NCBI GenBank assembly: GCA_009103225.1
Contig: RHPI01002069.1
Span: 1,134,962-1,198,961, forward strand
DNA: 64,000 bases
From: Chlorokybus atmophyticus
Taxonomy: Eukaryota > Plantae > Mesostigma and Chlorokybus algae
Direction of reading: 5' to 3'
A program made the translations under genes and the position numbers. Below are positions 1,792 through 63,507 of the stretch, in pieces. A model generated the notes under the pieces. It worked only from the letters and a program-made list of their open reading frames with translations, searched no databases and was not told the origin of the DNA. The first letter of the stretch is position 1, and each line of letters opens with the position of its first letter.

Positions 1792-4700
1792 AGAAACGGC
1801 TCACCTCTGTAGCTGGAGAGGCTCCTGCTGAGGTGGTGATGCAGCCTCACTATGATGTTGAATGTCCAGCGGCTGGCGTGGAAGCGTTGTTGACGGTTGG
1901 CGGCATGTGCGCAACGGCAACGCAAAGCGGTATGGTTCGAGTGCCCGACAAGGCGAGGCAGCTGTTGGGAGTCATGGCTCTGATCCGTGAGGGCAATGGG
2001 CCATGGATGGAGTGCAAGATGCTGGTGGATTGCGGCGCGAACAGCAATTGCATGAGTCGTGAGGTTGCGCGTCGGCACAAGTGGTTGTCATGGGCAAATG
2101 CCGGCTCGGTGGCTCTAGTGGACGGCTATGCGCCAGCAGGAGGAGCTTCCAAGCAAAGCAAAGAGCTTGAAATGCACGTGGGGATGATGAAGGATCGCCT
2201 ACGGTTTTGCTGCATCGAGCTGAACAACGGCTTTGATGGCATTTTGGGGCTGCCTTGGCTTTGGTCACATAACCCCGCCATTGATTGGAGGAAGCGGGTG
2301 CTCACTACCCCGGAAGCTGGTGGTGAGGTTTTGATGTGCTTCAATGCTTCAATGCAAGGCGCGTGTGTGGTTCAAGAGCGTGTGAGCTGCGTCGAGGCTG
2401 CTAGCAATGTGCTGCATGCGCGTGACGCGCACGACACGACGGCGCGCCAGCAAGCTGCACCACAACATGCTTCTAGCTCAAGGGGAGGGGTTCCAGAGCT
2501 GGTGTCACAAGTTTCTAAGACCAAGATGGAGCAGATCTGGTCCGGGAACAATGTGAAGGATGCATGGCTGTGCATGGTGCGTGAGACACCTCCCAAGTCG
2601 GACTTGGAGCTGGTCGGCACTGGTTCGGAGAGTTCGAAGGACCCCGAGGTGCAGAGGTTGCTTGAAGAGTTCAAAGACGTCATGGTGGATGGGCTACCAG
2701 CTGGTCTGCCACCCACGCGAAGTGTTGATCACCGTGTGGAACTGATAGAGGGCGTGCACAAGCCGCCGTACCGACCGGTGTACAAGTTGTCTCCGGCTGA
2801 ACTCGAAGAGGCGAGGAGCCAAGTCGAGGACCTTCTACAACGTGGGTACATCAGGCACAGCAAGTCTCCTTACGGTGCACCTATCCTATTTGTACGTAAG
2901 AAGAGCGGAGCCTTGCGCATGTGCATCGACTATCGGCCACTCAACAACATCACCAAGAAGAATGTGTTCCCTTTGCCACGCATTGATGAGTTGTTGGAGC
3001 AGCTCGAGGGTGCTGAGTTCTTCTCAAGCTTGGACCTAGCTGGTGGCTACCATCAGATCCGTGTTGCGCCCGAAGACGTTGAGAAGACGGCTTTCAACAC
3101 TCGCTATGGCCACTATGAGTGGTTGGTGATGTCCTTTGGCATGACAAATGCTCCGGCAACCTTTCAAACCTTGATGAATGAGGTCTTTGCTGATCTGATT
3201 GGCAAGGGCGTGCTAGTGTACCTCGACGACATCCTTGTGTACACAAAGAGCAAGAGAGAGCACGTGGCATTGCTACACGAGGTGATGCAGCGTTTACGTA
3301 CACACAAGTTGTTTGCTCAGCTCAACAAGTGCCGCTTCTTGCTTGAAGAGGTAGAATACCTTGGCCACATTGTATCCAAGCAAGGAATCAAGGCAGATCC
3401 AAGCAAGCTTGCCGCGGTGCGCGATTGGGCTGCCCCGAAGGACGTGAAGGGTGTCATGTCGTTCCTAGGGCTTGCCGGCTACTATCGTAAGTTTGTAAAG
3501 GGCTTTTCGCACTTGGCGGCACCATTGACGGCATTGTTGAGGAAGGGGGTGGCTTGGAGCTGGTCGGAGGCTGCAACAAAGGCATTTTCCGACTTGAAAG
3601 AGGCCCTGACATCGGCTCCCGTGCTGCTGCATCCCAACATGCAATTGCCCTTTGTGGTGGCGTGTGATGCGTCCGACAAGGCTATTGGGGCTGTTTTGCA
3701 GCAGGATCACGGCAACGGCTTGCAACCGGTGGCCTATTTCAGCAAGAAGATGAGCGGGGCTGAGCTCAACTACCCCGTTCATGAGAAGGAATTGCTGGCG
3801 CAGGTGCTAGCGCTACGGCAATGGCGTTGTTTCCTTGAAGGCAAGCGGTTCACACTTGAGACGGACCACTCGCCATTAAGGTACCTTCAAACGCAGCCTC
3901 ACCTCTCACGGCGGCAAGCTCGTTGGCTCGAGTTCTTCCAACTCTTCGACTTTGAAGTGAAGTACAAGCCGGGCTCTTCAAATAAGGTTGCGGACGCATT
4001 AAGCCGTCAACTCAACGCGCTTGAAACGGTGGTGCAAGTGCAGCCCAAGTGGCTTGACCAGATCCGTGCCTTATTGCATGAGGACGCGGTGGGGGAGAAG
4101 ACCATTGAGGCGTTGGAGAATGGGACTGAACATAGCGGCCTTTGGGCATTGAAGGACGGGCTGCTATGGCATGGCGATCGCATGTACATACCCAACATTG
4201 CGCACATGCGCGTGGCATTGATGAAGGAAGCGCATGATGTGCCAATGGCTGGTCATCAAGGGCTGGAACGGACACTAGCCTTGTTGAAACAGAAATTTTT
4301 CTGGTCGGAGATGCATCGTGACGTTAAGGACTATGTGGCATTGTGCGACACTTGTCAAAGGGTGAAGGCGAGCAATCAACGCGCCAGTGGGCTGCTCCAA
4401 CCATTGCCGATACCTTTGACGAAGTGGGAGCAAGTTACTCTTGACTTCATCACGGGGCTGCCACGGACACGTGAAGGGCATGATGCTATCTTGGTGTTTG
4501 TGGACAAGACTAGCAAAATGGTGCGATTGGCGCCATGTACGGAGACTTGCACAGCTCCCGAGGCTGCCAAGTTGTTCATCAAGCATGTGGTGCGCTCTCA
4601 TGGCCTTCCAAGAAGCATTATCAGTGATAGAGACCCGCGGTTTACTGGCAACTTTTGGAGAGCTCTCCACGCAACTCTAGGCACGAGCTTGAAGTTCAGC

Positions 4701-24511: not shown

Positions 24512-24576
24512 NNNNNNNNNNNNNNNNNNNNNNNNNNNNNNNNNNNNNNNNNNNNNNNNNNNNNNNNNNNNNNNNN
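24512..24576. other. Assembly gap (others at 42521-42798, 58945-59641, 61429-61506)
   Basis: Runs of N; two of them directly follow poly-G tracts. Confidence 0.99.
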
Positions 24577-24875: not shown

Positions 24876-27191
24876 ATGACGGCGGCGGCGTTGGCTGCCG
24901 CCACCGCATGCTCGGCCGGGTCGTTGCCGGCCAGGTTGCGCAGCCGCTGCTGCTCGGTGGCGCCTTCGCGGTCTCTGACGCAAGCAGACGTGCAGCGTGG
25001 CCAACCTCTTCTGCTTTCAGCTAGGGTTTTGTCTGTGCGGGCGAGACATTGGCGCAGCAGCCGTGTACATCATCTTGGCGCATGTCGGGCGTCTGCGCGA
25101 GAACAGCAGGCGACCAGCGACGTAGGCGAGGCTGCTGGAACAACGTCAACTTCCAGGTAAAGCCGAACAGTGTTTACGGCATGTATGAGAACCTGGTCTT
25201 AATGTGTGTAGTGGCATTGCATTCTTCGCGGAGGGTACTCTGCGTCGCTTACTACACTTGCCGCATTGCCATGCCGTCATCACTCATCAATTATACACTG
25301 ACTACTTATACGCACGCGTGCGGTCGTGCTGTTACCTATTGAGCTCAATGCAATAACATGTTATGCCACTGTAGAGCCGACTGCTTAAAACTTGATACCA
25401 CCAAATCGGTAACCACTGCGGGTGGTTGGGTTGGCATGGCAGATTGTATTGTGTGCATGCATGCATGTATCGTAGCTTCGTGCCATGCAAGAACTACATT
25501 GACGAACGCCTTGTCATAGGCAGGAACTGGACTGCATTGGCACAGGTGTGGACGTTTCATGCTATGTGAAGTGCAATTCGGACGACAGCAGCAGCTCCAG
25601 CAACAACGCTGAGGACAGGAGTGGTGCGGATGCGGCAACCAGGCAGCCAACATTTACAGAGCAGCTGCTTGACAATGCGCTTCTTATTTCTCCATTCTTC
25701 TTTTGGGGCACAGCCATGGTGGCCATGAAAGGCGTTCTCCCTCTAGCAGGTAGCCTACGTAATAATCTATATGGTTCAATTATGGCACCGTCTTTGTCTG
25801 CCAGCTGCATGGTTACACTGCCTGACACTGTTGCCATGCAGGGGAGATGTCAGTATCATCGATTAGGCTTATACCAGCGGGCATGTTATTGGTAGCATAT
25901 GCCACGTACAGCGGGCGGTCCTTTCCGAAAGGCTTCCAGGCCTGGTTTGCAATCACTCTCTTCGCCCTTGTGGACGGCACCATGTTCCAGGTACGCTGCT
26001 TGCTAGCGTACACACCACTCAAAAGTCAATCTTGATTGCAGTGTGCGTTTGTTGTATTGCTCAGGGCTTCCTGGCGGAAGGGCTGCGAAGAACCAGCGCT
26101 GGGCTTGGCAGTGTACGCGTTCTTGAGTAAAGCATGTGCCAATGTGAGTGATGCAGGTGGATGGCTGTTCTCAAAAGTTGTGCGCAGGTGATTATTGACT
26201 CTCAACCTCTTACTGTTGCTCTGCTGGCGTCGTTGCTATTCGGGGAGAGGCTGTCATACATTAATGTGCTGGGTTTGGGAGTTGGGGTGGCTGGACTCTG
26301 CTTACTGGAGGCAAGCCAGCTCTGCACGAGATTGCAGCATCCTATAGTACCCGAGTTATGTTATCAACGCAGGGACAGATTGTATGCTTGCCTTCCAGGT
26401 ACCAGCAGAGACAATAGCCGCAGCGTTGTCCGATGCGCCGGGCACGGTGGCCAGGCTATGGCAAGGAGTTGAGTTCGGGCAACAGAGTGGGCTGTGGGAC
26501 AGCGGCGAGTGGTGGATGCTGCTCGCCGCTCAGAGCATGGCTATAGGCACTGTCATGGTGCGGTGGGTTTGCCAGTATGTCGACCCCGTGATGGCCACAG
26601 GATGGGTGCGTGTGGGAACCTTTCAGTCGTGGCATGTTGTTGGGTGCGGGTTAGTTCAACTGACCACGTCCATTCTTGCAGCACTTACTCCTGGGTGGTG
26701 TGCCGCTTGCGCTCTTAGCTGTGGCGAAGCACGAGCCTGCAGTATCAGGCGGCCTCGCCAATCTGACATTCACCGACTACCTTTCCCTAGTGTACACATC
26801 TTTGTTTGGGAGCGCCATCAGCTACGGCGTGTTTTTCTACAACGCCAACAAAGGTTTGTTTACGACCAGCTCAGCTTTGTGCACTTGCGTGTGTGGCACC
26901 ATCGAGTTTTGAGTTTTGCGTCATTGTTGAGTGCGTCACACTGTGGCACGCAGGCAACCTGACCCGCTTAAGCTCGCTTACTTTCCTTACCCCAATGTTC
27001 GCTGCTGTGTTTGGGTAAGCTCATGTGATTTTATCTGCTGCTCACTTGTACTATGGCAACCAAGACGCGGTTAACAATGTGTGTCCTGGTTGTGCAGTTA
27101 CCTCTTTCTAGGAGAGACGCTGACGCCATTGCAACTCTGTGGAGCAACAGTGACTCTTGGTGCCATAGCGCTGGTCAATAAAAAGTCATAG
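24876..27191 (+). CDS. Plastid EamA/DMT-family transporter
   Basis: Exons SPFFFWGTAMVAMK, RLIPAG, FALVDGTMFQGFLAEGL, VIIDSQPLTVA, SAISYGVFFY and LSSLTFLTPMFA, two EamA halves. Start exon inferred from a transit-like ORF. Confidence 0.88.
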
Positions 27192-28195
27192 CGGTTTCTG
27201 TGGCCAGACTAATAGATAGGGTTAGCTACAACACATAAATTGTGATTCTACATTGCATATATTACAGCCTGTAATGCAGATGGTACGGCTCTGTCCAGGA
27301 CAGGTTATGCACGTAAGCACACCAATTCATGTCTTTGGCCCCGTCCAGCAATTACTAGCATCTGCTTTCTGTGGTTTTCTCCAGGTTGCCAAGGCACCAA
27401 GCCATGCTTGCCATCAACAGCAGTAAGTGTGTTACAGAAATTCTGTCCCACAAGCTGTACATGTATCAGCTGTGTCTTGATGTGCGCATCTGGTTGATAG
27501 TCTTTGCTGAGTCATGCGACAAACAGCGGGTTTTCTTGTTCCAACCTTGCATCATGCTGGGAGGGTAACCAAGGACTCTCCGCCAAAGCTTGCACCGATC
27601 AAGGGGCTGCAATGCACTCATGTCCCCAAAGCAACAAGTCACGATGTTCAAACAACCACATGTAGTATTTACAAGCCCGTTAACGTGTACAAGCATTCAA
27701 TCAGAACTGAGGAACTCCGTTGCCGACTCAGGTCCGTCATCATCATCATCAGGGAACCACAAATCATCTAAGGACAATGGTGGTAATGAAAACTCCTCTA
27801 GCCTGGACTCCCACTCCGCTGCAGGAATACCACAGCATGAATACAGAGGTCAAATTTTGCAAGCACAATGCTGAGCACAGCTGTTGTTGGGTCTGTTATA
27901 TCACTTGAGAAAGCAAGCTTGCTGAGCTGATTGCTACATGTGCTGAATCGTGCAACACATGTACATGTGCGAGCAGGTCGTCCTCAACAACCAATGACTC
28001 TCCAAGAGCAATTGTCTAGCAAGCGAGCAGCAAACTTAACACTGGGTGAAAGTACAAACATTGTGCGGATGTCTGCTGCTTGATTGAGCTGTGCTCTATG
28101 CTTGTCATGCATTTACACAAGACATCAACCATGTATGGGAGAGAAAACAAAACTGGACACGCACTGCGTGGCTGTGCCAATGTGTGCGTGCAGCT

Positions 28196-28930
28196 TCACA
28201 CGTATGACATTGTCTCACGTGCAAGGGGTCCGGTGCCAGCTAGCAGTGCAGCAGGAGTAGGCGGTGCTGGAGGCGAAGGGGGCATTAGGGGCGGTCTAGC
28301 CAGCCACAAATCTTCTGCCTCATTATCATCCTTCTCCTCCTCCTTGTTGCCGCCAGCAGAGGCGCGGATCCAGTTTGCCATCGCCATAACAGCCCTGAGA
28401 TTACCACCATTTTCGCGGGCGGCAGCTGCACGGCCGACAAGCTCAGCAATCTCCCTGTCCTGGGCTGCAGCCGCCTCTGCCTCAGCCCTCTCCTCCCATC
28501 CGGCCGGCGGGCCCACCTCCATTCCATCCTTGGCCCACTCCTCCGCCCGCTGCTCCGCCCACGCCTCCCATGCGGCGTCGGAGGTGGGCGGCAATGACGC
28601 CACGGAGGTCTGTGCTGGCTTCCTGGCAGACTCCAACACTGGGGCAGGCAGCAACTTCCCGGCTGCCTTAACAGCGCTAGAAGCTCCTACACCCGGCTGC
28701 TGTTTCCCAAACCCACCCTTCTCACCGCCACCGCCGCCGCCGACCCGCTGGGCCTTGACGTTGGTGATGTCCCCGAGGGCACGCCTGGGCGTCGGCCCTG
28801 CTGCTGCTAATCCTCCTCCTCCTCCTCCTCCTCCTGCCCCCAGCTTCCCGCCCGCGGCCTTGCCGCCCCTCGCAGGCGTCGCAAACGCCGCGTTCTCATC
28901 CCGCCACGCCGTCGCCGTCCTCGCCTGCAT
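28196..28930 (-). CDS. Intronless low-complexity protein with DEN motif and D-box; securin/PATRONUS-like
   Basis: 244 aa from the ATG at 28930. Contains RDEN, RRALGDITN (D-box) and DGMEVGPP, with an acidic C-terminal half and no cyclin box. Confidence 0.7.
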   Translation of the reverse strand: MQARTATAWRDENAAFATPARGGKAAGGKLGAGGGGGGGGLAAAGPTPRRALGDITNVKAQRVGGGGGGEKGGFGKQQPGVGASSAVKAAGKLLPAPVLESARKPAQTSVASLPPTSDAAWEAWAEQRAEEWAKDGMEVGPPAGWEERAEAEAAAAQDREIAELVGRAAAARENGGNLRAVMAMANWIRASAGGNKEEEKDDNEAEDLWLARPPLMPPSPPAPPTPAALLAGTGPLARETMSYV

Positions 28931-30339
28931 CCCGCCGCCGCCGCCAACAACGGCAACAACAACGACGACCCTCACACTCCCGCGCTCTGTTTGAAGCACT
29001 CAAACCCGGCTCATTGATCTCATGCCAAACGTCTACGAAATCACAGAATCACACGCAGTCGGATCAGTAACCGTCACGGGGTGCTCAGTGAACTCAAAAC
29101 CCTAACTTTCGAATGAATACTGACGAACTGGCCAGGTGGCAGGCTGTGAGAGGAGTGCGAGTTGTGCTTTTTTGCGTGCGAGCTTTGACAGATTGACAGG
29201 TCAGCAGTTGGGGGTGGTGCCTGTTGCTGCCGCCGCCTTCTGTGTGTAGGCGTCGTAGTTTTGGACCGGCGGCGTACTCAGCTGGCGTATTGCGAGGTAC
29301 ACATACCTGTGTCGGGTTGAGAGCGGACGGCAGCATTGGCAGCAGCGGGGGCGGGGGCGGGGGCGGGTTCCGTCTTTCCTCCAGCTTCAGCTTCAGGTCA
29401 GGGAGGCGCACTGGTCCGGCATGGTTTGAAGGGAGGGTCTGTCCACCAGACCGTGCCGCATCTCAATATTCCTGTGGGGGGTTAGCCGTAAGTTTCAACC
29501 AACCGGCCAGAAGCGAGTGCAGCGTTACTTGACTTGACGGTTGACGCCTGCACGGAGCTGGTGCTGGGAGCGGCAGGATGAGCCTCTAGGTAACGCAAGC
29601 ATGTGTGGGTGTTAGGTTGCCGCCATTGAGACAGATCTTGATAAATTCCGAGAGTGCTTCTGTCCACAATGCCAAGCAAGCTTGCGTCAAAAAGTGATCT
29701 GCCGGTTGCGAGGACAGTTGCAAAGCAGGCAGGCGGCTTGGCTTGAGTGTTCATGCACGCACAATCACAGCGTTGGACTGCAACAAGCCCAAGGTTGACA
29801 TGTCAAACGCTGCAGAGCTTTCAGGGCTTTGTGTCAGTGCAACGTGTCACGTGGTCAGTGCTGTATGACTCTTTGACAGCTATTGCTCGCAGTGCATGGA
29901 GTCACGCAGCATGCGCATAGTCTGCAAGTGCGCCTGTTGGCCACCTGTGATATCTTTAGCAGAATGATGTCTTGTCTGCATGCTTATTGAGGCCCTTCTT
30001 CGTTTCCCACTCATTTTGCATGTTCCGTAGATAGTCAGCACATGCGATCAGAATGATTTACGTTCTGCGCAACTGAGTCGATGTGCCAGAGCTGGTCAGC
30101 CATGTCACCTGACCAAACGCTGCTGAAGTTGTCAGTCCGTCCCAAGTATCGCTTTGGAGTGTCGTGCAATGGGCGAGATGGTTATTTCCCGCTTGTGCAC
30201 ACCTTGCAGCGCCCTCACGTGCTTGGCATTGAGTCTTATGGACCTCATTTTATGGCAGGTAGGCGAGTGGTTGGGCGGCTAGGCGGCACAACGTGGAGAG
30301 GACAGCATATACGATCACTAGAACATCGACGGTAGGATC

Positions 30340-31020
30340 ATGCCCAGCAGGTCGCTGCCGGCACAATGTACATTTCTCACGTCGGGGCAGGCGTTCGTGG
30401 GCACGCAGAATGTGTCGCACAGCAGCAGCAGCGTGACCATAGGAGATGGAGGAGTTATAGGTAGCGGAGTTATAGGCAGCGGCGCTCTGTCAGGTGGCGG
30501 TGCTCCCGCACCAAAAGATGAGGCGTGGAGCGTGAACGTGCGCGTGCAAGGCAGCAACCCGCAGTGCGGGTATGTGTGCGGCTCAATGGAGGCGCTGAAC
30601 GTGCCTTCGGCGGAGTCAAGCGTGGTCACCTTCTGGGAAGGTGAGACTGTCGACAATGTCAACTACACCTTCTTCACCCACAAGTGGGACGCCGACAGAG
30701 ACACCGACATGAAGCACTGGCTTCGCTTCGATGCCTTTGCTCCCTTGCATGAAGCCGTTCTTCGTGATGGTGGTCGCTCCATCGACCTGGCGAGCTACCC
30801 CTACCTCTTCATGCGCTGGAAGGAGAAGTTCTTTGTCAATGTGGGTGCCGAGTGTGGCCTTACCATTGCCGGCTTCTACTATGTATGTTTATCTCGCCGT
30901 GACGGCTCAGTGGATGGATTCTACTATGACCCCAACAGCAGCCCTTATCAGAAACTGGAACTGCGCCCGACGGCGGAAGGCCGGCGTGGCCACGCCTTTG
31001 CCACCTACAGTTTGTGCTGA
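30340..31020 (+). CDS. GID4: GID4/Vid24 substrate receptor of the GID/CTLH E3 ligase
   Basis: TFWEGE, KWDADRDTDMKHW, LFMRWKE, IAGFYYVC and GFYYDPNSSPYQKLEL are hallmark GID4 motifs. Single exon. Confidence 0.92.
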   Translation: MPSRSLPAQCTFLTSGQAFVGTQNVSHSSSSVTIGDGGVIGSGVIGSGALSGGGAPAPKDEAWSVNVRVQGSNPQCGYVCGSMEALNVPSAESSVVTFWEGETVDNVNYTFFTHKWDADRDTDMKHWLRFDAFAPLHEAVLRDGGRSIDLASYPYLFMRWKEKFFVNVGAECGLTIAGFYYVCLSRRDGSVDGFYYDPNSSPYQKLELRPTAEGRRGHAFATYSLC

Positions 31021-31820: not shown

Positions 31821-34800
31821 TCAATCAACAACAAGCGCAGCAGCCAGCTTCGTCTCAACTTCTACACTGTCTCCATTTGTGATCTGTTCACCGGCAGGTT
31901 GAAGCATGCTGAGCAACGTTGCAGTGTCCCTTCCAATGACATCAAGGGCTGCGATCGCTGCCATCTTCTTCGCCATCTTCTTCTCTGGATTTTTGGCTCT
32001 CGCAATCTGGATAGATGATAAAACCGCATCGGTTGTGTGACATGCGCATGCCAACTGATGCAGTGTTTTCTAAACTCAGTTTTCTACCTTGCGTCCTTCG
32101 ATACACACTTCCACATGAGTGCTGCCACCCGATGAAGGTACCTCCTCAAAACGTAGCCGCACATGCACTTGCAAACATGAAATGCACAGTGTATGACGCT
32201 CGCCCATACAGTCATCAGTCTCATGGTACTGCTTCAATAAGCCTACCATCTGGCAAAGTTCATGCAACTCCGTGACAGGGTGCAAGTTTCCGGTTACAGG
32301 CACTTCTGCTGGACGAATCAGAGGTTCCAACACCTACACATCACTCACACACTTGAATGCCTGTCTTGCCGCCCTGATGCATGTACTATTGATGGGTAAG
32401 CGCTCATCAAACCTGCCATGTGCGATCAATGTCCATGCCAGTGTCAAGATACACCGCGCCCGCAAGGGATTCGAGAATGTCGCCCAAAACTTTTGGTGCA
32501 CGCACATCATCCGTGCCGAAACCGGCAAAAAACTTCCGAAATTGACTTAATTTATTGGTTGTTTGAGCGGTTGCTTTCTCCGCCTCACTCGCTTCCCTTC
32601 TTTCAACAACTGCAGCAAACTCGTTGATGGCTGCAGTTAAAGTGGGGGACGCATGCAGCAGGAACTTCTGCAATCCCGCTGATGAATCGCCTCCTGGAGC
32701 CAACGCAATGCGCGCAAAGCTGCACACAGCACAACAAAATTTCCTCAGCATCATAGACGACGGCTTGCCTCTTCACCAAGCTAACTCAGTACACACTCAC
32801 CACTCATTGTTTGTGAGTTGTGCGCGCAGGATGCTTAGCATCCCGGGGTCAAAGTGTCCGTACGCAGAGAATGCCCATCGCATGACGCAGCAATCAAGCA
32901 CAGCATCACCCAAAAACTCCAGTCGCTGGTAGCATGAACGCGCCTGTCAACGCACAAGTTTAAACATGCAATTTGCGACATGCACACCGAACATGCAACG
33001 CAAGTTCTCTAACCTTGGACCAAGTAGCGTGTGTGAAGGCCTCTTCTAGAAGGCTACCATGCTTGAAAGTGTAACCAATAGCGCGCTCCAACCGCATGAA
33101 GCAAGTGGACTGAGACACCTTTGGGGGGTACTTTGCCAGAAGCTCACTCAGCAACTCGCTCTCCTTGTCTTCATCCAGGACGCTGATGCCCACCCACCTA
33201 CACACGCTGATGGTGAGAGCCGCCCGTGGACACTCAAAAGCGTGCAAGGGGCATTACCGCATAAAATAGCGAGCAGCTGAAGGGCCGCCCTCAACAAGGT
33301 ACGCTCCAATCAACGCCTCAACAGCGTCAGCAAGTGTTTTGCCAGGAATGGTTTGACCAGTGGATGAATCATCGAGCTGTGAAGACCCCAACCCGGGTGC
33401 ACACCATGTCTGCAACACACACAGTGCTTCAGCGCTTTTGGACAAAAGCAGCACAGTGCACATACTGCCTTCACGGTCGTCAATTCGCAATGCTAGATCA
33501 AGCCCCTTCATTTGGCATAGGTAGTAGCAATTATGGCTGCAACTTGCGCTGCTGGCTTTTTGCAGCGTACCCGCATGTCGAAAGCCTTGGCTGCAGTCAG
33601 GCCCGACAGGCCTGTCTCAGTGGCCAGAGCGCTGAGAGTCTTGTTGCACACGGCGTTGCTTCGCGCGGCGCTCAGCTGGCCTTCATGCCAGGCTGGCTGT
33701 AGCAGCATCAGCCCAGAGCTAACATGCAGCTTCAGGGCCGCATCCCCGAGCACCTCGAGCCGCTCCAGCGTTGTCGGCACACCCACCGATGCGGCCGTCA
33801 AGGCTTCAACCACCTGATGCACATTGTCCTCTGAAACATATTGTCATGCATCCAGATGGGACATGCAACAGCCTCAAGCATTGGGCATACCCGTTCAAGT
33901 GGGATGCAGGACCTCCATGCAACCTTCTCTCTCAACTCATGCGCACACAGGAAGGTCTCCAATCGCCATATTGCCGCAGGCAGCCAGGACACGGCGCGCC
34001 AAAGGGACGCCGGGATGGGATGCATCCAACAAGTCTGCATGCATTGCAAGGTGAGGTAGGGTCGTGGCAGCTTGCAACTCTCTTGGAGACAACTCAAGTC
34101 ACCTGTGGCACCAAGAAAACTGGAGGGGACTTTGCTGCTGCTTGGTTGTCCTGATGGCCGTCTACATCACTATTAGCTATGCTGTTTGCAGCAGTGCCTG
34201 CGGCCTTCCTCTTTACTCTATCCTTGGTTGCTTTTGCAAGCAGCAGCGGACATGATGCAGAAATGTTTCGTACTTCCAACATGGGCTGTGACATGTCGAC
34301 GGCGACGCGATATCTGATAAGGCATGCGGATCATTTTAGCAATGGTGATAGGAGCAGCAGTACACAAGGCTCGTAGCAATTAATATAAAAGGCACCAGCT
34401 TACTTTTCAGTGTGGTAGTCAGCAAAAGACCGTTCATTCTGCTGACGGCCGCTTAAAAATGTTGAAGCAGGGCTCATATCATTTCGCACTTGAAGAACAA
34501 AATGCTCGTGTCCTTGGGACATGCCTGTTACCACCCTGTTCGCGAAACAGGCGTAGTCGCCGACGCTTGGATGGAGCCAACCGTCAGAGTTTACAGCCTC
34601 TGCTGTATCTACGTTGACTTGCTCCACCAGTTGCCAGTTGATGTCCACGACATCACTATTGACATTACTACTGCTGGAGTCGGCAACAGGCAACACCAGG
34701 TAGCTCCTCGACTCGTCCTCAGCAGCGGCTTGATTACGTGCGTGGCTGCGAGTAATGGCAGCAAACACAACGCTTTGGAATGTGCGTGCAGCGTGATACT

Positions 34801-37800
34801 GCTCCATTGTGAGTGTGAGCATGCGTGCGGGACTGAAGCGAAGCCCCCCGTGCAGGTTGTGGCTGAACTGCAGAGCGACTTCAGGTAGATCGTCTGCATT
34901 GCCGGCACAAGCAAACAACATCACCATCAGGACCAGGATGTCAAGCAGTCCTGCGGCTGCATACCTGGCGTAGGGCCCCATGCGAGTAAGGCTAACGGAG
35001 CCACATCTCCGCAGGTGAATGAGGATATTGTGGAGTCACCCGACAGCGATAGTGGATAAATGCGGTGTGCATACATGGTTACGGTTGAGCAGGCAGAAAT
35101 GGCGCGAGGAGCGATGAAAGCAGAGGGAATAGTGGGTAGCACGGCTGTAATAGCTGCATACTTCCGCTTGCGAGGAGATGCCCTTATTCCTTCAGGCAGC
35201 TGCATGAAGAGCAGTATGCGTTTGTATGCGCATGTACAAAGCCAACTTGACACAACTCTCAACCTACCTCCCGCACATCTGGCAACAAGTGGTTATTTAT
35301 AGCTCCATGCTTGTGCAGAACGATGCACGCTTCTAAAGCCGCAGACTGTTTGGCTTTCTTGGTGTTGAGCTGCGGCTCCCCGCGAATGCACTTGGATGGG
35401 AGGGGGCAGTTGGCAGGAAGATGCACCTCCGTGCAATACATGTGGGATACGCACCCGTGAAGCCAGCCAATCTCCTTGAACACCGGACGCGTGTTGATGC
35501 AGTACCTGCAGGCCGCTTAGCAAGGATGGTGCAGCAGACTTCTAGGCCCTACATATGTGTGCGAGGGGACTTACTATACATGTGCATCAGTGAACTTACT
35601 CATCTTGAGGGAGAGTGACGCAGTAGTTGTGCAGGAGAGAAATGCTGGAGTCGAATGTGATTATGGCACCAGTTGACTCTACCTTGTATTCTTTACCCAT
35701 GTACAACTACAACAGGACGTTCAGTACGCGTTGTACGCATGACAATGTTGTCAACCACTCAGTGAGGGCGTAGTGTTGTGGGCACCGGGAGTACCTGTGG
35801 AGTGCCAGGGTCAACAGGCACATTTGCAGGGTCGGTGCGGGCCAGAGCCATGGCAAGCATGTGGCCTTCAGTCTCATGCAACGAGCGCAGGATAGCCTCG
35901 TGAGCAACATCACCCCTGAGTGTGCATCGCTCAGCATTTTAAATCATTCAACACCCCTGAAAGGCACACATGCACCCCCAGTTGTACCTCTCAACCATGT
36001 GCACGTAGTCGGAACCTTGCTGGCGTGCACGCCCGCGAGATTGGATGTTTGTCGCAGCAGTAGCGGGAGAATTAAAGCGCACCACACAGCGGCACCGCTG
36101 TATGTCTATACCTTCCTCTGCTACAGATGTTGCTATCTGCAGTTTCATGTCATGTCAAACTTCAGCTTCAGTATGCATGTGTAAGCAAGCATGAAGTATA
36201 CCAAAAAGGCAGCACAGACAGGTGCAAAGCCCCTCGTGCTTTGGCTTACCAGCACATTCAACCTGCCGTCCCTAAACTTCTCTAAAAGCGCCCGCTGCTT
36301 CTTTGTGTCCGCTCCACAATAGCCGGTGGCACTGCGCGAGTGACCAGTTATCAAGCCCACACGCAACCTTTTGGTCCCGCAGTCACTGCCACCATCATCT
36401 TCAAAGGTGAAGGATGGAAGGCGTGTGAGAGTGTTAAGCAGTGCTGCCGCTACGTCACGCCGCTCCACGAACACAATCGCTCGCAAATCAGGCTGGCAGG
36501 CGTACTCGTGCAGCAAGTGCACTAACGAGCATGCCTGCGATCAAACAAGACATTTGTCAACGACCACAGCATACATGTCTTGCACACAATGATTGTAAGC
36601 ATGCGGTGACCTTGCGGGATAGCAGCACAGGTTCAGTCAGGGTAAGATCGATGGTCAAATCCTCGCCAGTTGCACAGTTTGTAAGCTGCACTCCTGACGT
36701 TACCAGCTGAAGGGCGCTGAGCAACAGACTATCCTGGTGGACAGTGGACACCGCGTGTTACAGAAGGAAAGGCAGAACACCAGACGTACGGCCACAACAA
36801 GGCTCACACGCATTACGGCATCTCCATCATTGAGCATTTTGGCCTTGCTGCCTTCTTTGTCATCGACGTCCATCTGTTCCTCAATGTCCACATTGCAGGT
36901 GGAGACTGTTGTGCCTGAGGTATGTTTATGTTTATGTTTTAACGCGTCCTGAAGGTAGTTTGCTGCAGCTAGACGCCCAACCTGCGTACATCAGATACGG
37001 TAGAATGGCATCAATCATGGCATCAAATATTGACAACTGACATTGCCACAGGTGGGCCAAAACCCCCTGGTACCTGCACAAGGAAGGCGTGTGCGGACAG
37101 TATCTGCCGACGCACAAGCTTGTCCAGCTCGCCATTGGCTGTGCATATGTCCTGCGCCACAGGTGATTGGGTGAGACCTGCGCACACATACTCGTGCACT
37201 CCTGAGGGTGGCTTCGCCTGCACTTGCAGGCAAAGCCACCTCTAACACGCTAAGATGCAACCAAGATCACTACCAGCGTCCAATTACACTAATCTTGCAA
37301 GGAAGGCTACAAGGCTGGCAACCGACAACAGACTCTGCCATGCCTCAGCCTAGACTTGGTTAAGCTATGAATTAGGCGCATGCACTCGGTGTTGCCCAGG
37401 TATACATTCAGTGGCATGATAGTTGCTCAGGTTATTATCGATAGATAACACATGAATACTCAAGCAGCAGCGCACTGAGCAGACAGCCAAACTGACATAC
37501 AAGCAATGACATGAACAACTTACCACACGGCAGGTGGGGATGTCACCAAGGACATGACTACCATGTGGTGGTCAAGCCCTTGGTGACAGCCCCAAGTGCC
37601 GCACTAAGGCATTATCGCTGCTATCAGATTGCGCACAAGACAGACACACCTCGCTGAGGCCAAACAGCTGGAATGCAGGCTTGAGAATGCTGTCCGCTGG
37701 TGCGTCGTAGTAGTGCACGATCTCGCTAGGCGTGGGCGTGTGCGCCTCAACTGCGGCGCGATCGCTTGGCGTTAGAAGTGTTGCATGCAGCCGCGCCTCC

Positions 37801-41561: not shown

Positions 41562-43183
41562 ATTGCTCGGTAGTCATGCAGCGGTTGTGTTGACAATTAC
41601 AAACACTAGACATACCCACAACATGTAGCAGCGTTAATGTTTGGACTTGGTTACTCTCTTACTCCCTCGATGGAGGCCCTTGAGGAATATGTGGGATAGC
41701 TGAGCTCGAGGGGAGGCAGTGAGTACAACCAGGAGCAAAAGCCAGGTCATGTCGTGTATTGGCAATGATTAGCAAAGAAGTAGCTCAGCAGACCTTCGAG
41801 GTCGCCTGCCTTGATAAAGAGTTTGAGGTTGCAGTCAGCATGATGTCTGATCTGTGCTGTTGCATAACACACCCTTGGGATTGATGGGACGGCTGTTGAA
41901 TACGGTTACTCTCATAGTTGCAAGTCAGATTCTGCAATGTCATTGTACAAAGGATGCCAGGCGGGTCACACGCATGCAAGTAACATTGCACTCATGATAT
42001 ACATGAACTTAGCACAGAGCCCGTGTGGGCAGGTAATGCACAGATACGTATGTATGCATGCCTAACGGGGAGGTCTAGACTAGTGCAGTGTAGTGAGGAA
42101 CAAACAGTGTGTATAGCCCGGTGGTTGTGTTGTAATGTGCTTGCATGTTGCTGTTTGGCATGCTGTGAGTGAGGTGATGCATGTCTCGAACTACTGCCAG
42201 CATATCCTATACAAGCGTCCGACACTTTGCATGCAGCCTACGTAGCGTACCATCTCTTATACACCATTGCCACCATGCGTTCACATACAACACCACCGGG
42301 CTACACACCAACATACTGCTACTACGCTACTCACTAAGCACAACGCTAACTGATCACTTACCGTACTCAATCAACATTATGCATGAGTACTTTTATGTAC
42401 GCAAGTAGTGGTAATCTATTATTGCCTAGAAAAAACAACTGCACAAGTGAGGAGTACAATGTCTTTGTATTTTTTAGGGAATTTTCTAGAGAAGCCCCCC
42501 CCTCAATCTTCACATATTTTNNNNNNNNNNNNNNNNNNNNNNNNNNNNNNNNNNNNNNNNNNNNNNNNNNNNNNNNNNNNNNNNNNNNNNNNNNNNNNNN
42601 NNNNNNNNNNNNNNNNNNNNNNNNNNNNNNNNNNNNNNNNNNNNNNNNNNNNNNNNNNNNNNNNNNNNNNNNNNNNNNNNNNNNNNNNNNNNNNNNNNNN
42701 NNNNNNNNNNNNNNNNNNNNNNNNNNNNNNNNNNNNNNNNNNNNNNNNNNNNNNNNNNNNNNNNNNNNNNNNNNNNNNNNNNNNNNNNNNNNNNNNNNCC
42801 CCTTTTACAAGACAAAAAGCACTGCACTCCAAAATTTTTATGCTTCTTTGATGGCGGGCGCAGGCTCTTCCAAGTAAATACGGTAGTGACGGAGCTGCAT
42901 ACATAGTCGTGTATATAGCACGAGGTGAGTGTGTTCTGCAGAGTGTTGCATGCGTGGTGTGGTCTGAATGGGCATACCCCTCTAGCATTTTCTGTACAAC
43001 TTGTGTATGCAGCTCCATCACTACCATTCACACGCTTGTATACCACAAGCGTGTGTATGGTGGTATGTCATTTACTGTAACAGCATATCGCGGGCCAATG
43101 TCTGCGCGCAGGAACATTCTTACGTCGAGGGGCCCAGCGTACCTTCGGCGACTGACGTGCATCGCTAACCGAGGTGCTGACAC

Positions 43184-58399: not shown

Positions 58400-61300
58400 A
58401 TCCTTGCGACTTGGCAAGCTGCGGCAGCAGACTCGTCCTCACTGGCGTCACCACACATGACTTGTTCAGCCTCCCTGTCAAGCCAGAGAGAAGCAAAGGG
58501 AACCATCAGTCCAACATGCTCTCCGTGTGTTTATGTTTATGCGCGTATGGATGCGTGCATGCGTGCGTGCGTGTGTGCATGCGTGTGTGCACCCTATGTG
58601 CGCACGCGCCCTCTGCTGACCAGTGGCAACCACACTCTCTCACCTGTTGCGAGCATGGCCGCTAGCATGGCTCTTCTCCTCGCCGGCGTGTGTCCACTCA
58701 CGGCTGCTGCAATCGTACTCGTGTTTGCCTCTCCGCTGCTGTGCGGTCTTCCCGATCCTCCGGCCGGTGCGTTACCCCCTCCGAAAACCACGTCGTTGGC
58801 GTCGCGGTTCTTCAGGAGGAGAGTCAGCTGCTCCTCGGCCTGCTGAGCGGAACGGAGCTGCGCGCGCTGGAGACGACCCTCGCGCTCCAACTGCAGGGAG
58901 TGGGGTGGATGGGTGAGTGTGTGTGTGGGGGGGGGGGGGGGGGGNNNNNNNNNNNNNNNNNNNNNNNNNNNNNNNNNNNNNNNNNNNNNNNNNNNNNNNN
59001 NNNNNNNNNNNNNNNNNNNNNNNNNNNNNNNNNNNNNNNNNNNNNNNNNNNNNNNNNNNNNNNNNNNNNNNNNNNNNNNNNNNNNNNNNNNNNNNNNNNN
59101 NNNNNNNNNNNNNNNNNNNNNNNNNNNNNNNNNNNNNNNNNNNNNNNNNNNNNNNNNNNNNNNNNNNNNNNNNNNNNNNNNNNNNNNNNNNNNNNNNNNN
59201 NNNNNNNNNNNNNNNNNNNNNNNNNNNNNNNNNNNNNNNNNNNNNNNNNNNNNNNNNNNNNNNNNNNNNNNNNNNNNNNNNNNNNNNNNNNNNNNNNNNN
59301 NNNNNNNNNNNNNNNNNNNNNNNNNNNNNNNNNNNNNNNNNNNNNNNNNNNNNNNNNNNNNNNNNNNNNNNNNNNNNNNNNNNNNNNNNNNNNNNNNNNN
59401 NNNNNNNNNNNNNNNNNNNNNNNNNNNNNNNNNNNNNNNNNNNNNNNNNNNNNNNNNNNNNNNNNNNNNNNNNNNNNNNNNNNNNNNNNNNNNNNNNNNN
59501 NNNNNNNNNNNNNNNNNNNNNNNNNNNNNNNNNNNNNNNNNNNNNNNNNNNNNNNNNNNNNNNNNNNNNNNNNNNNNNNNNNNNNNNNNNNNNNNNNNNN
59601 NNNNNNNNNNNNNNNNNNNNNNNNNNNNNNNNNNNNNNNNNGGGTGCGTGCGCGTGCGCGTGTACACATATGTCTCTGTGTGGGTATGGTCTTGCACTTG
59701 TGTGTGAGTGCATGTGCGTGGGCATGCGTACCAGCGCCACAGCGTTCGCCAGTGCCGTTTCTCCCTCCGCCCGCACTTGCTTCAGCTGCGCTTGCGTCTC
59801 CAACCTACACACTCCCATTCATCACCCACCATCACTCAACACAAAGCCCCACTTCACAACCAAATCACAATCACCAAGCTCACCTGTCGGCGGCCCGCTG
59901 CTCGCGCAACAGTCCGATCTCGCGCGCGGCCGCACGCTCCGCCTCCGCCAAACGGGAGGCAGCAGCCGACGCCGCCGATGCCAACCGCTGCTCCCCGTCC
60001 TTCCTCAACTGCACACGAGACACACACACACACACAAGCAGCATCAGACAAACAGCCGATCAGCAGTGTTCACACAGCAACAATCACGCACACGTAAGTG
60101 ATGGTGAGTATGGTGGCTGTGTGGCATATGATCGTGTGCGTGTACGTAGAGACGAGAGATGAGACGGCGTGTGTGCGTGTGCGTGTGCACGTGCGTGTGT
60201 GCGTGCATGTGTCTCTCACTTGTGACATCTGTGCGTGTGTGGCCTGTGCCGCCGCCTCCATCTCCTCTCTGAGTGCTTCCACCTGGCTCTCCGCGCCCGC
60301 GAGTGCTTCCTCCGCCCTCTCCCGCGCCTCCGACAGCACCCTCTCTCCCTCGTCGCGCATCGCTTTAACCTGACGGTCGTGCGCGGAGGCGGCGGCGGCC
60401 AGCGCGTCGCGATGCTGACTTGTCAAGTCTGATAGAGAGGCGGCGTGACGGTCCTCGAGGTGGCGGAGAGTCTCCTGCGGGTGGTACGTGTTGTGTCGGG
60501 GGTGTTCGAGACACACGCAGACGCACGCGCATGCGCATGCGCATGCGCACAGACGGCGTGTTGTTTACAAGTACCTGTTGTAGGGCCTGCTGTTCCTGCA
60601 TGTGGGCACGCAGGCGCTCCCCGCGCTCGCGGGCCTCGTCGAGCTGGTGCGACACGCTCGCCAGCTCCGTCCGCACGCTCTCCACCTCCCTCACACTCGC
60701 CTGCACACGACCAGAAGATTGTGACATCCTCGATCCACAACCCGGGTTCCGTTTGCTCGTGAACATGCACGTGAGCGCGCAGGCATCAACACACGCACCT
60801 GCAAGGCGTCTTCTGCTGTGGTGCGCGCGGCCGCCTCGCTCTCCCGCCCCGCGCGCTCCGCCTCCAGCTTCTCCTGCAGCTCCATCACTCGACTCTGAAC
60901 AAATAAATACATCCAACAAGCGTCAGGTATCTCTGCTTGCGTAGTTCTGGTTCTTGTGATCCCAACACGGCTGTGTGTCTCTCACTTGTGCTGCGGCTGC
61001 GAGGGCGGCCTCGTTGTCTCTCAGGGCGGCGGCGAGGCGTGCCTCGAGCTCGGCGGCGCGGGCGGAAAGGGACGCGCGGTCGCGGCGGTCGGAATCGGAC
61101 TGGGCGCTTAGAGTCTTGACCTGAAGGAAGGGACGGTGAGGTGTGGGTGTCACTATACCAGTGTCTCTACCCAACACTGTGACTGTTAATGGGGCTCGAG
61201 AGTGAGAGTCTCTCACACTGCTCACAGCACTGCTTACTTGAGCAGTGAGTTTCTCCCTCTCCGTGGCGTGCTTCTTGGCCTCCTGCTCCAGCTTGGCCTC

Positions 61301-63507
61301 GCGCTCAGATATACCCTGTCATGAACAGGGAGGTAAATTGGTATAGAAAGCCTGAAATGGCTGGCAGTGTCCGTGTGATTTGTTTCGAGAAGTACAATTG
61401 CTGTTATGGATGTTCCACTTTGTGTCCCNNNNNNNNNNNNNNNNNNNNNNNNNNNNNNNNNNNNNNNNNNNNNNNNNNNNNNNNNNNNNNNNNNNNNNNN
61501 NNNNNNCTTACCGCCCCTTGTCTTACCTGTTTGACGGACTCAAGTGCTTGCGCGCGCGCTCGCTCCTGCGCCTCGAGCTCCTTCTGCAGCGCGGCGATCT
61601 CCTTGTTCTTGCTGTTCAGAGCCACATCCAACTCCTGATGAAGAAACCACACAGAGTTGTTGTCTACACGCGTGTGCGTGTACGAGCGCGTGTGCATGGT
61701 TGGCCTTTCATTAGCGTAGCCGTCATGCAGCGCGTGTGCGTACCGCGGCGTTGACTTCTGCGGCGAGCGCGTTGACGTCGATGCTGACCTCCCCCGCGTT
61801 GATCACCGCGTGGGTCTCGATGCACATCGCACGCGACGCAAACTCCAACGTGCTGTCACAACAGATTCCATTAGACACACCATACGTGTTCTGCTGCTGG
61901 ATCTCCACATCCAGCCAGGCTCTCTTACGCGATGGTTTCGTTGACGGAGTCGTGCGCTGGCGACACGCACACGAGCAGGCTGGTCTTGCAGTTTCCGCCG
62001 ACGCTGTCCTCGAGGATGCGCGTCAGCTTGCTGTCGCGGAACGGGATGTGCTTCTTACGACCCGCAAGAGCCTATGACATGAACAACAACATCAACATGA
62101 CCAATACTGACACCAACAACATGCACCAGGTACTCGATGTGTGTGTGTTTTTCATCGTCATCAACATCGTCATTGGTTTGATATGTGTGTGCCTTGCCTG
62201 CACGACGTTGCCGAAAGCGAGGAGGGATGTGTTGATGTTGGTGGCTTCCTTGAAGGACTGACCCGTCACGCCGCTCTTCTTCGTGCGCTCGCTGTTTGTC
62301 GTTGTTGTTGTGTCAAGTTTGCGGACTCGTTGACGGCGTGCAACAGTTATTGATGAAGACAATAAGGACAACCCACCTGCCGGCGAGGTCGACGACGGTG
62401 AGCTTGCCAAACTTGGCGGCGACGCTCTGGCCAGCCTGGCCCTTGTCGCGCTTCGTCACCTTGAACTGGAACACCGCGTGCGACCTGTGCGCACACGTGC
62501 GTATGTGGAGTATGTTGGGGTGTGGGTGGGTGGGTGTGGATGTGGGTGGGTGTGGGTGGGTGGGTGTGGGTGTGGGCACACGCACCTGCGCATGCGTGCG
62601 TGCTTGAGCGCGTGTGAGCGGCACGACAAGTGCAGGGGCAGACACAAGGGACTTTTGTATGTGAATGCAAACAACATATGTGTACCTGCTTGATGACTTG
62701 TTCATCTTTGTCTCTGCGTAAACGAGGTTCTGTCGTCCTCTCTGGAACAGCGCCATGCACTCGGCCGGCGACCGGCACGTCGTCCACGCCAACCCCTCCA
62801 CCTGACCACCCGTGCGTATCTGCAGGTCCTGGCCTTTGCTCCTGTCCTCCGCAAGCAGGTCATCAACCTGCTCATTGTAGATCTACACACACAGAAGGTT
62901 AGGATTACTTTCCCTAAGAACATCATATCATATAGATACCCACGCACACACACCTGCAGCATGGCTGCCTGTACGTGGTAGGCATGGTTGGTATCGGCGG
63001 CGGCGTGCACAAACAGGGCAGCGACCAGTCTGGGTAGTAAGCCTTGCTCGCTGGCTGGACCACTCCCATTCAACAAGCTGTGGGTCTTGCCCGCACCAGT
63101 CTGACCATACGCCAACACACTGGACGACAAGCAGAACGATGAGTACAACAACAACGACAAGGACATAGACATTAACAAGCTACATGCCTGCCGTTGTAGC
63201 CCTGTAGTACGTCCTTCAGTACTCCCCTCCCCACCGCTTCATACACGTCTTTCTGCGTGGCCGTCTGCGCGAAGGCCCCGTCGAAGTTGAAGGGTCTGGG
63301 TCTGAGTCGCGGGGCGGAGGCGTCCCCTCCCGCCAGGACCCTGTCCGTGGCGCTCCCCTCCTCCATGTTGATTATCACGCGACCCTCGTCCTCGCTGTCG
63401 ACCACGGCGGCGGCGGAGTGGGGACCGTCCATGGCCTCGCGGGGGAGGGGAGGACGGACGCGAGCGAAGACGAGGACACGGCCGCCGCCGGGGGTTGTGT
63501 CGGCCAT
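58400..63507 (-). CDS. Kinesin with N-terminal motor and long coiled-coil tail (3' end approximate; two N-gaps inside)
   Basis: RVLVFARVRP; FNFDGAF; GYNGSVLAYGQTGAGKT; NKSSSRSHAVF; VVDLAG/SER; NINTSLLAFGNV; HIPFRDSKLTRILEDS. Confidence 0.92.

Follow-up and report, generated by a model that had tools for sequence, protein, structure and literature searches.

Results

Genomic context of the candidate gene

The window, by which we mean the whole analysed stretch of 64,000 nucleotides from contig RHPI01002069.1 of Chlorokybus atmophyticus, contains on its minus strand an open reading frame (ORF) at 28196-28930. According to the ORF list and the translation, it starts with an ATG at 28930, ends with a TGA at 28196-28198 and encodes 244 amino acids. 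The ORF forms an island of 64-68% GC, compared with approximately 47% in the flanks. On its downstream side, the plus strand carries an ascorbate-peroxidase-like gene (~21.8-22.7 kb) and a gene for an EamA-type transporter (~24.6-27.2 kb), which is convergent with the candidate and ends near 27170. On the other side, a gene for a GID4/Vid24-type substrate receptor of the GID/CTLH ubiquitin ligase occupies 29200-31020 of the plus strand (Vac_ImportDeg, E=1e-44 at 30340-31017), and exons of an RNase III/Dicer-like gene follow on the minus strand at 32400-35000 (Ribonuclease_3, E=1.7e-13). The GID4/Vid24 gene is arranged head-to-head with the candidate at a distance of about 300 nt, and the two may therefore share a bidirectional promoter. 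Assembly gaps (runs of N) are located at 24512-24576, 42521-42798, 58945-59641 and 61429-61506, the first of them immediately before the start of the gene for the EamA-type transporter.

One MSA-core element (CCGTT) lies in the promoter region of the candidate, 19 nt before the ATG, which does not exceed the background density, and no E2F site was found there. An upstream ORF of 7 codons, ATGAGATCAATGAGCCGGGTTTGA, lies at 29017-29040 of the minus strand, approximately 90-110 nt upstream of the ATG, and is possibly part of a 5' leader.

Degron motifs and disorder in the N-terminal half

The predicted protein begins with MQARTATAWRDEN. Translation and motif scanning located a DEN-box, a KEN-like degron for APC/C, the anaphase-promoting complex, at residues 11-13 within WRDENAAF (28892-28900, minus strand), and after it a D-box, RRALGDITN, at residues 49-57 (28760-28786, minus strand), so that a DEN near the N-terminus is followed by an RxxLxxxxN box as in RSS1 and PATRONUS proteins. 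The strict D-box pattern RxxLxD[IV]xN has a single match, in this ORF, among the 92,604 residues of the window's six-frame segments. The arrangement of DEN or KEN followed by RxxLxxxxN inside the first 100 residues was reached in a fraction of 8.5e-5 of 200,000 shuffles of the protein. No second D-box-like RxxL was present in the N-terminal half. Four S/T-P sites were found (T18 in TPAR, T47 in TPRR, S219 and T225), two of which, T18 and T47, match the full CDK consensus, and T47 directly abuts the D-box.

A low-complexity spacer separates the DEN-box from the D-box and includes a run of eight glycines (residues 33-40; 28812-28835, minus strand), which reads as (CCT)8 on the plus strand. Length polymorphism is likely to arise from this microsatellite. 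The repeat at 28796-28845 was skipped in read mapping, and the glycine run swamped the word-based protein search. Further CCG repeats are located at 28731-28742 and 28932-28943.

A single-sequence AlphaFold2 (AF2) model of the 244-residue protein was of low confidence overall (mean pLDDT 56.7). Residues 1-110 were modelled with pLDDT below 50 and without secondary structure, and helices were predicted at residues 118-134, 145-173, 178-192 and 198-209. The charge is strongly polarized, with a basic N-terminal half (pI 11.4) and an acidic C-terminal half (pI 4.4). A Pfam search of the 244-residue protein returned no family at E<=10. The candidate is thus small (244 residues, or 277 if spliced as described below), disordered and blank in Pfam, which is the gross character of RSS1 and PATRONUS proteins.

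A WAGE-like patch and its fit to a separase site

The WAGE motif of region II of rice RSS1 has been defined as W-A-K/R-D/E/G-G-V/I-E (Ogawa 2011, PMC3104554). In the candidate, the translation compared with this consensus and the position of a linker in the AF2 model delimited a patch, WAKDGME followed by VGPP, at residues 132-142 (28505-28537, minus strand). Residues 130-142 read EEWAKDGMEVGPP, and residues 135-142 form the string DGMEVGPP. WAKDGME (residues 132-138) departs from the land-plant consensus at position 6, where it has Met for V/I; the other 6 of 7 positions agree, W, A, G and the invariant Glu among them. Hence the strict pattern gave no match and the relaxed pattern gave a single one. 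A string of the form WA[KR][DEG]G[VIML]E was obtained in 1.1e-4 of 200,000 protein shuffles and is unique to this ORF among the six-frame segments of the 64-kb window. If independence is assumed, the joint chance of the DEN/KEN plus D-box arrangement and the WAGE-like string is about 1e-8 in shuffles. In the AF2 model, DGMEVGPPAG is a non-helical linker that joins the helices 118-134 and 145-173.

Separase cleaves after sites that read, from P6 to P1, [D/E/S]-hydrophobic-E-x-x-R, and securins have the P1 Arg replaced, as in the human motif EIEKFFP. Aligned to this register, the residues G136-M137-E138-V139-G140-P141-P142 place a hydrophobic residue at P5, Glu at P4 and Pro at both P1 and P1', with Gly at P6, where separase sites have an acidic residue or phospho-Ser. 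An acidic residue, Asp135, occupies P7, one residue out of register. From this reading of the sequence, Glu138 is a candidate for the pseudosubstrate P4 residue, with Met137 as P5 and Pro141 as P1. The predicted Glu138-x-x-Pro-Pro layout is compatible with an uncleavable pseudosubstrate, and a P1 Pro in place of Arg agrees with the securin principle of a replaced P1 Arg. A minimal separase-site string of the type ExxR, E-S-A-R, is also found in the disordered middle of the protein (residues 100-103; 28622-28633), with Val at P6; by chance, approximately one such string would be expected.

Acidic C-terminus and gene model

Residues 196-207 form an acidic stretch, KEEEKDDNEAED, followed by LW (28310-28345, minus strand; from the translation), which matches region III of RSS1. 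With EEEKDDNEAED at residues 197-207 and the low pI of the C-terminal half, the candidate has the acidic region III of RSS1 and PATRONUS proteins.

The ORF is probably not the complete coding sequence. Just before its stop, a putative splice donor, GCAC|GTGAGA, was recognized with 28219 as the last exon base, which would limit coding exon 1 to 28219-28930 of the minus strand (residues 1-237 plus one base; from the ORF list, the translation and the computed donor). A putative acceptor, TATTCCTGCAG, ends in CCTGCAG 400 nt downstream, with 27818 as the first exon base. The predicted intron at 27819-28218 of the minus strand, obtained by reading the sequence, has a length of 400 nt, 46.5% GC and the form GT...CAG, which is also the form of the confirmed introns of the neighbouring peroxidase gene. 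Beyond it, an in-phase segment of 41 codons at 27697-27818 of the minus strand would be exon 2, encoding PEWESRLEEFSLPPLSLDDLWFPDDDDDGPESATEFLSSD up to a stop and giving a whole protein of 277 residues. Splicing in this way would swap the last 7 residues for an acidic tail of 41 residues that includes DDDDD. Such a strongly acidic tail is as expected for region III. In the predicted exon 2, the [ED]DLW motif seen in exon 1 (residues 205-209) recurs. Of the open minus-strand segments that separate the ORF from the convergent gene, the one containing this exon is the longest, and TGTAA follows 24 nt past the exon's stop. The GC content of exon 2 (49%) is below that of exon 1, and the exon gave no match in Pfam. 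We consider one 3' intron and a 277-residue product to be the probable gene model.

The motifs listed by the first-pass annotation, an N-terminal RDEN, a perfect D-box and several TP/SP sites, were all recovered by translation, the last of these as four sites. Its description of a small, disorder-prone protein agrees with the 244 residues and the low pLDDT of residues 1-110, that of a protein free of cyclin and kinase domains with the blank Pfam search, and that of an acidic helical region after DGMEVGPP with the modelled helices behind the motif and the pI of 4.4. The term intronless has become doubtful in view of the plausible GT-AG intron at 27819-28218 and the acidic tail to which it leads. 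That annotation had also named splicing to a downstream folded domain as an outcome that would speak against a securin. Because the convergent EamA-type gene ends near 27170, only about 500 nt remain downstream of the candidate, and there is no downstream folded domain; the minus-strand ORFs between the candidate and the convergent gene gave no Pfam match. A fusion to such a domain was rejected for lack of space before the EamA gene.

Strand choice and sequence variation

Contigs assembled from four sequencing runs gave short, exact matches inside the ORF and inside the putative intron. As the intron was matched too, these contigs may derive from DNA. No splice joint was seen in the contigs of the four runs, which cover small shares of the stretch. 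One contig, matching 28541-28687, is only about 95% identical and comes from the same study as the run with exact copies. It carries four synonymous third-position changes, the substitution L93V and an in-frame insertion of GCT behind 28597. Public data therefore include a related strain or species whose allele differs slightly, and the pattern of its variants fits coding constraint. The variants do not select a strand, because third positions coincide on the two strands and the third-position changes are likewise silent in the antisense ORF.

This antisense ORF spans 28080-28994 of the plus strand (304 codons); its product is rich in Ser, Ala and Pro and lacks motifs, and it has no ATG within the GC-rich part. 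Neither the GC content at the three codon positions nor an RSCU score derived from approximately 1000 neighbouring codons separated frames or strands. Since codon usage and variants do not discriminate, the choice of the minus strand rests on the motifs.

Homologue searches

A phmmer search of 1.84 billion cluster representatives retrieved no homologue, and none came from word-seeded searches of 5.8 billion proteins with the whole protein, residues 112-175 or residues 43-146, or from a scan of JGI metagenomes with back-translated peptides. A phmmer search of the PDB returned noise from the glycine runs and no securin match, and the Pfam Securin profile PF04856 gave no match at E<=10. Exact-sequence look-ups of the candidate ORF and of its GID4-like neighbour found no record, and the motif strings of the candidate had no match in a literature text search. 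Among the look-alikes proposed by a protein language model, the animal Securin family PF04856 was the sole named family, with scores of 0.85-0.87, which lie below the evidence level of the tool. These blank single-sequence searches agree with the earlier remark that securins are too diverged for BLAST, and with the report that algal members of the RSS1/PATRONUS family were reached only after many PSI-BLAST iterations (Cromer 2019, PMC6690013). Because no homologue was retrieved, family membership of the candidate rests on motif architecture and not on alignment.

In metagenomes, the degenerate DNA pattern for WA[KR][DEG]G[VIM]ExxPP yielded 13 loci, approximately the number expected by chance, and an upstream D-box or DEN-box was absent at all 13. 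They were rejected as family members and regarded as chance matches, none of them having an upstream degron. Some of these loci lie on unrelated contigs with identical short ORF text, e.g. WWARDGIEPPPPAF (L003 and L011, at 1130-1161 and 3312-3343; also L006, L008 and L009), pointing to a conserved element, non-coding or RNA, and not to a protein.

Discussion

Family assignment

Rice RSS1 is a protein of 243 amino acids with three regions, namely region I with a DEN-box together with a D-box, region II with the WAGE motif and region III, an acidic C-terminus, and its homologues have been defined by the same three regions (Ogawa 2011, PMC3104554). They are known from monocots, basal angiosperms, gymnosperms, ferns and mosses. 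RSS1 binds the phosphatase PP1 and acts in cell-cycle progression under stress (Ogawa 2011, PMC3104554), and its APC/C-dependent turnover is known from the literature. Arabidopsis PATRONUS1 and PATRONUS2 (PANS1/2) have been established as securins: their C-terminal half binds separase, they interact with the APC/C, a form without the D-box is lethal, and suppressor mutations map to separase (Cromer 2019, PMC6690013). The same study linked PANS to RSS1 and then, by iterated PSI-BLAST, to proteins of Ostreococcus lucimarinus (XP_001422400.1) and Micractinium. There the WAGE Glu is called "extremely well conserved", the range given being monocots to algae, and is favoured as the pseudosubstrate residue (Cromer 2019, PMC6690013); the pseudosubstrate role of this Glu is a proposal even in plants.

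The three RSS1 regions are found in order in the candidate, with a WAGE-like patch in region II, and we consider it probable that it is a securin gene of the RSS1/PATRONUS family, a new member of a known family. Its homology to RSS1/PATRONUS is suggested by the sequence, and its securin function, including binding to separase, would follow by analogy. Of the earlier proposal, the securin reading stands as the best available one, while both of its claims to novelty fail. A securin of green algae would not be unrecognised, since algal proteins had already been linked to RSS1/PATRONUS (Cromer 2019, PMC6690013), and DGMEVGPP, taken before as a separate motif of fungal type, turned out to start within WAKDGME and to contain the C-terminal part of this RSS1-type WAGE patch.

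Proposed mechanism

If the candidate is such a securin, its basic, disordered N-terminal half would present the DEN-box and the D-box to APC/C-Cdc20, which would ubiquitinate nearby lysines (K24, K29, K59, K71, K76 and others) at metaphase. The moment of destruction could be adjusted through the CDK sites at T18 and at T47, which adjoins the D-box. The C-terminal half, which is acidic and partly helical, would attach along separase, a protein not encoded in the window, and the WAGE patch would be placed in the active site as a pseudosubstrate, with Met137-Glu138 mimicking the hydrophobic-Glu pair of P5 and P4, and Pro141-Pro142 at P1 and P1' making the chain uncleavable. Destruction of the candidate would then free separase to cleave cohesin.

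Alternative explanations

The main rival explanation, which we regard as unlikely, is that the candidate is a genuine RSS1-like APC/C substrate whose main job is other than separase inhibition, e.g. a cell-cycle or stress regulator with a principal partner such as PP1, as rice RSS1 was originally taken to be, the WAGE patch serving another partner. The binding of RSS1 to PP1 and its action on the cell cycle under stress (Ogawa 2011, PMC3104554) speak for it, as do the extrapolation of the securin role of RSS1 from Arabidopsis PANS1/2 and the departure of the candidate's WAGE region from the separase-site consensus at P6. It is opposed by evidence, both genetic and physical, of antagonism between the family and separase (Cromer 2019, PMC6690013), by the fit of the candidate's Glu-x-x-P-P to an uncleavable pseudosubstrate, and by the candidate itself, in which no PP1 docking motif of the RVxF type was found by eye.

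The D-box invites a different explanation. Its form, RxALGxIxN, is common to B-type cyclins, of which it is the classical D-box, and no retrieved homologue ties the candidate to any family, so the ORF could be the N-terminal exon of a B-type cyclin, an APC/C inhibitor of the OSD1/UVI4/GIG1 type or an unrelated APC/C substrate with a chance WAGE-like string. We hold this to be improbable, as the chance of the WAGE-like string in the candidate is about 1e-4 and neither a cyclin box nor another Pfam domain is present in the ORF or in the minus-strand ORFs down to the convergent gene. A cyclin exon was rejected on the absence of a cyclin box in the ORF or downstream, where the convergent gene leaves about 500 nt. 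Inhibitors of the OSD1/UVI4/GIG1 type have a GxEF box and a C-terminal MR tail besides their D-box; both are absent from the candidate, which ends in ...TMSYV, or in ...FLSSD if spliced, and this identity was rejected since there is neither a G.EF match nor an MR tail. Least probable of all, and in our judgement very improbable, is that the minus strand holds no protein-coding gene and that the ORF is a chance product of the GC-rich island or the antisense of the plus-strand ORF at 28080-28994. Both strands are open at the locus and are not told apart by codon usage or GC3, the Atlas recognition value of the candidate is low, and the run contigs contain no proof of RNA. Nevertheless, an ordered combination of DEN-box, D-box, WAGE and acidic tail would arise by chance at a rate of about 1e-8, the plus-strand product is motif-less, rich in Ser, Ala and Pro and without an ATG inside the GC-rich part, and the frame is kept in the contig of about 95% identity.

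Significance

Securins are essential yet fast-evolving and are missed by routine annotation, and the cell-cycle literature on Chlamydomonas of 2022 mentions only a "hypothetical securin analog". Publications of 2011 and 2019 had already described the family and its occurrence in algae, so that a further member leaves the known picture unchanged. With an RSS1-type candidate from a green alga that diverged early, it becomes possible to test which residue of plant securins blocks separase. Should the WAGE Glu be the pseudosubstrate residue, the hydrophobic-Glu-x-x-Pro-Pro layout of the candidate would decide which one of the two glutamates considered for plant securins is functional and would bridge plant, fungal and animal securins at the level of motifs, supporting a single origin of securins before the split of plants and opisthokonts. 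We offer this larger claim tentatively and regard it as rather doubtful at present.

Comparison with known securins

Animal and fungal securins (human PTTG1, yeast Pds1 and fission yeast Cut2) share with the candidate the N-terminal KEN/D-box degrons, the disorder and a central pseudosubstrate Glu, which is predicted in the candidate. In these securins the P1 Arg of the pseudosubstrate is replaced and the C-terminal half binds along separase. They have no detectable sequence similarity to the candidate, which has Gly rather than an acidic residue at P6, and no docking motif of the LPE or NxLx-hydrophobic-E type was recognised downstream of its WAGE patch. Arabidopsis PATRONUS1 and PATRONUS2 are likewise small and disordered, with an N-terminal DEN-box and D-box, and by analogy with their separase-binding C-terminal half the same would be expected of the candidate. 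Dicot PANS proteins carry E-x-F-L-H-D/N-H in mid-protein instead of WAGE, whereas the candidate is of the RSS1 (WAGE) type. The algal homologues of O. lucimarinus and Micractinium, compared here by description only, are from the green lineage too and their WAGE-type Glu is reported as conserved; Chlorokybus differs from both in belonging to an early streptophyte lineage. Relative to rice RSS1, the candidate has Met at position 6 of the WAGE motif, a single D-box and long glycine runs, so that the likeness is one of motifs. [quoted passage not shown]
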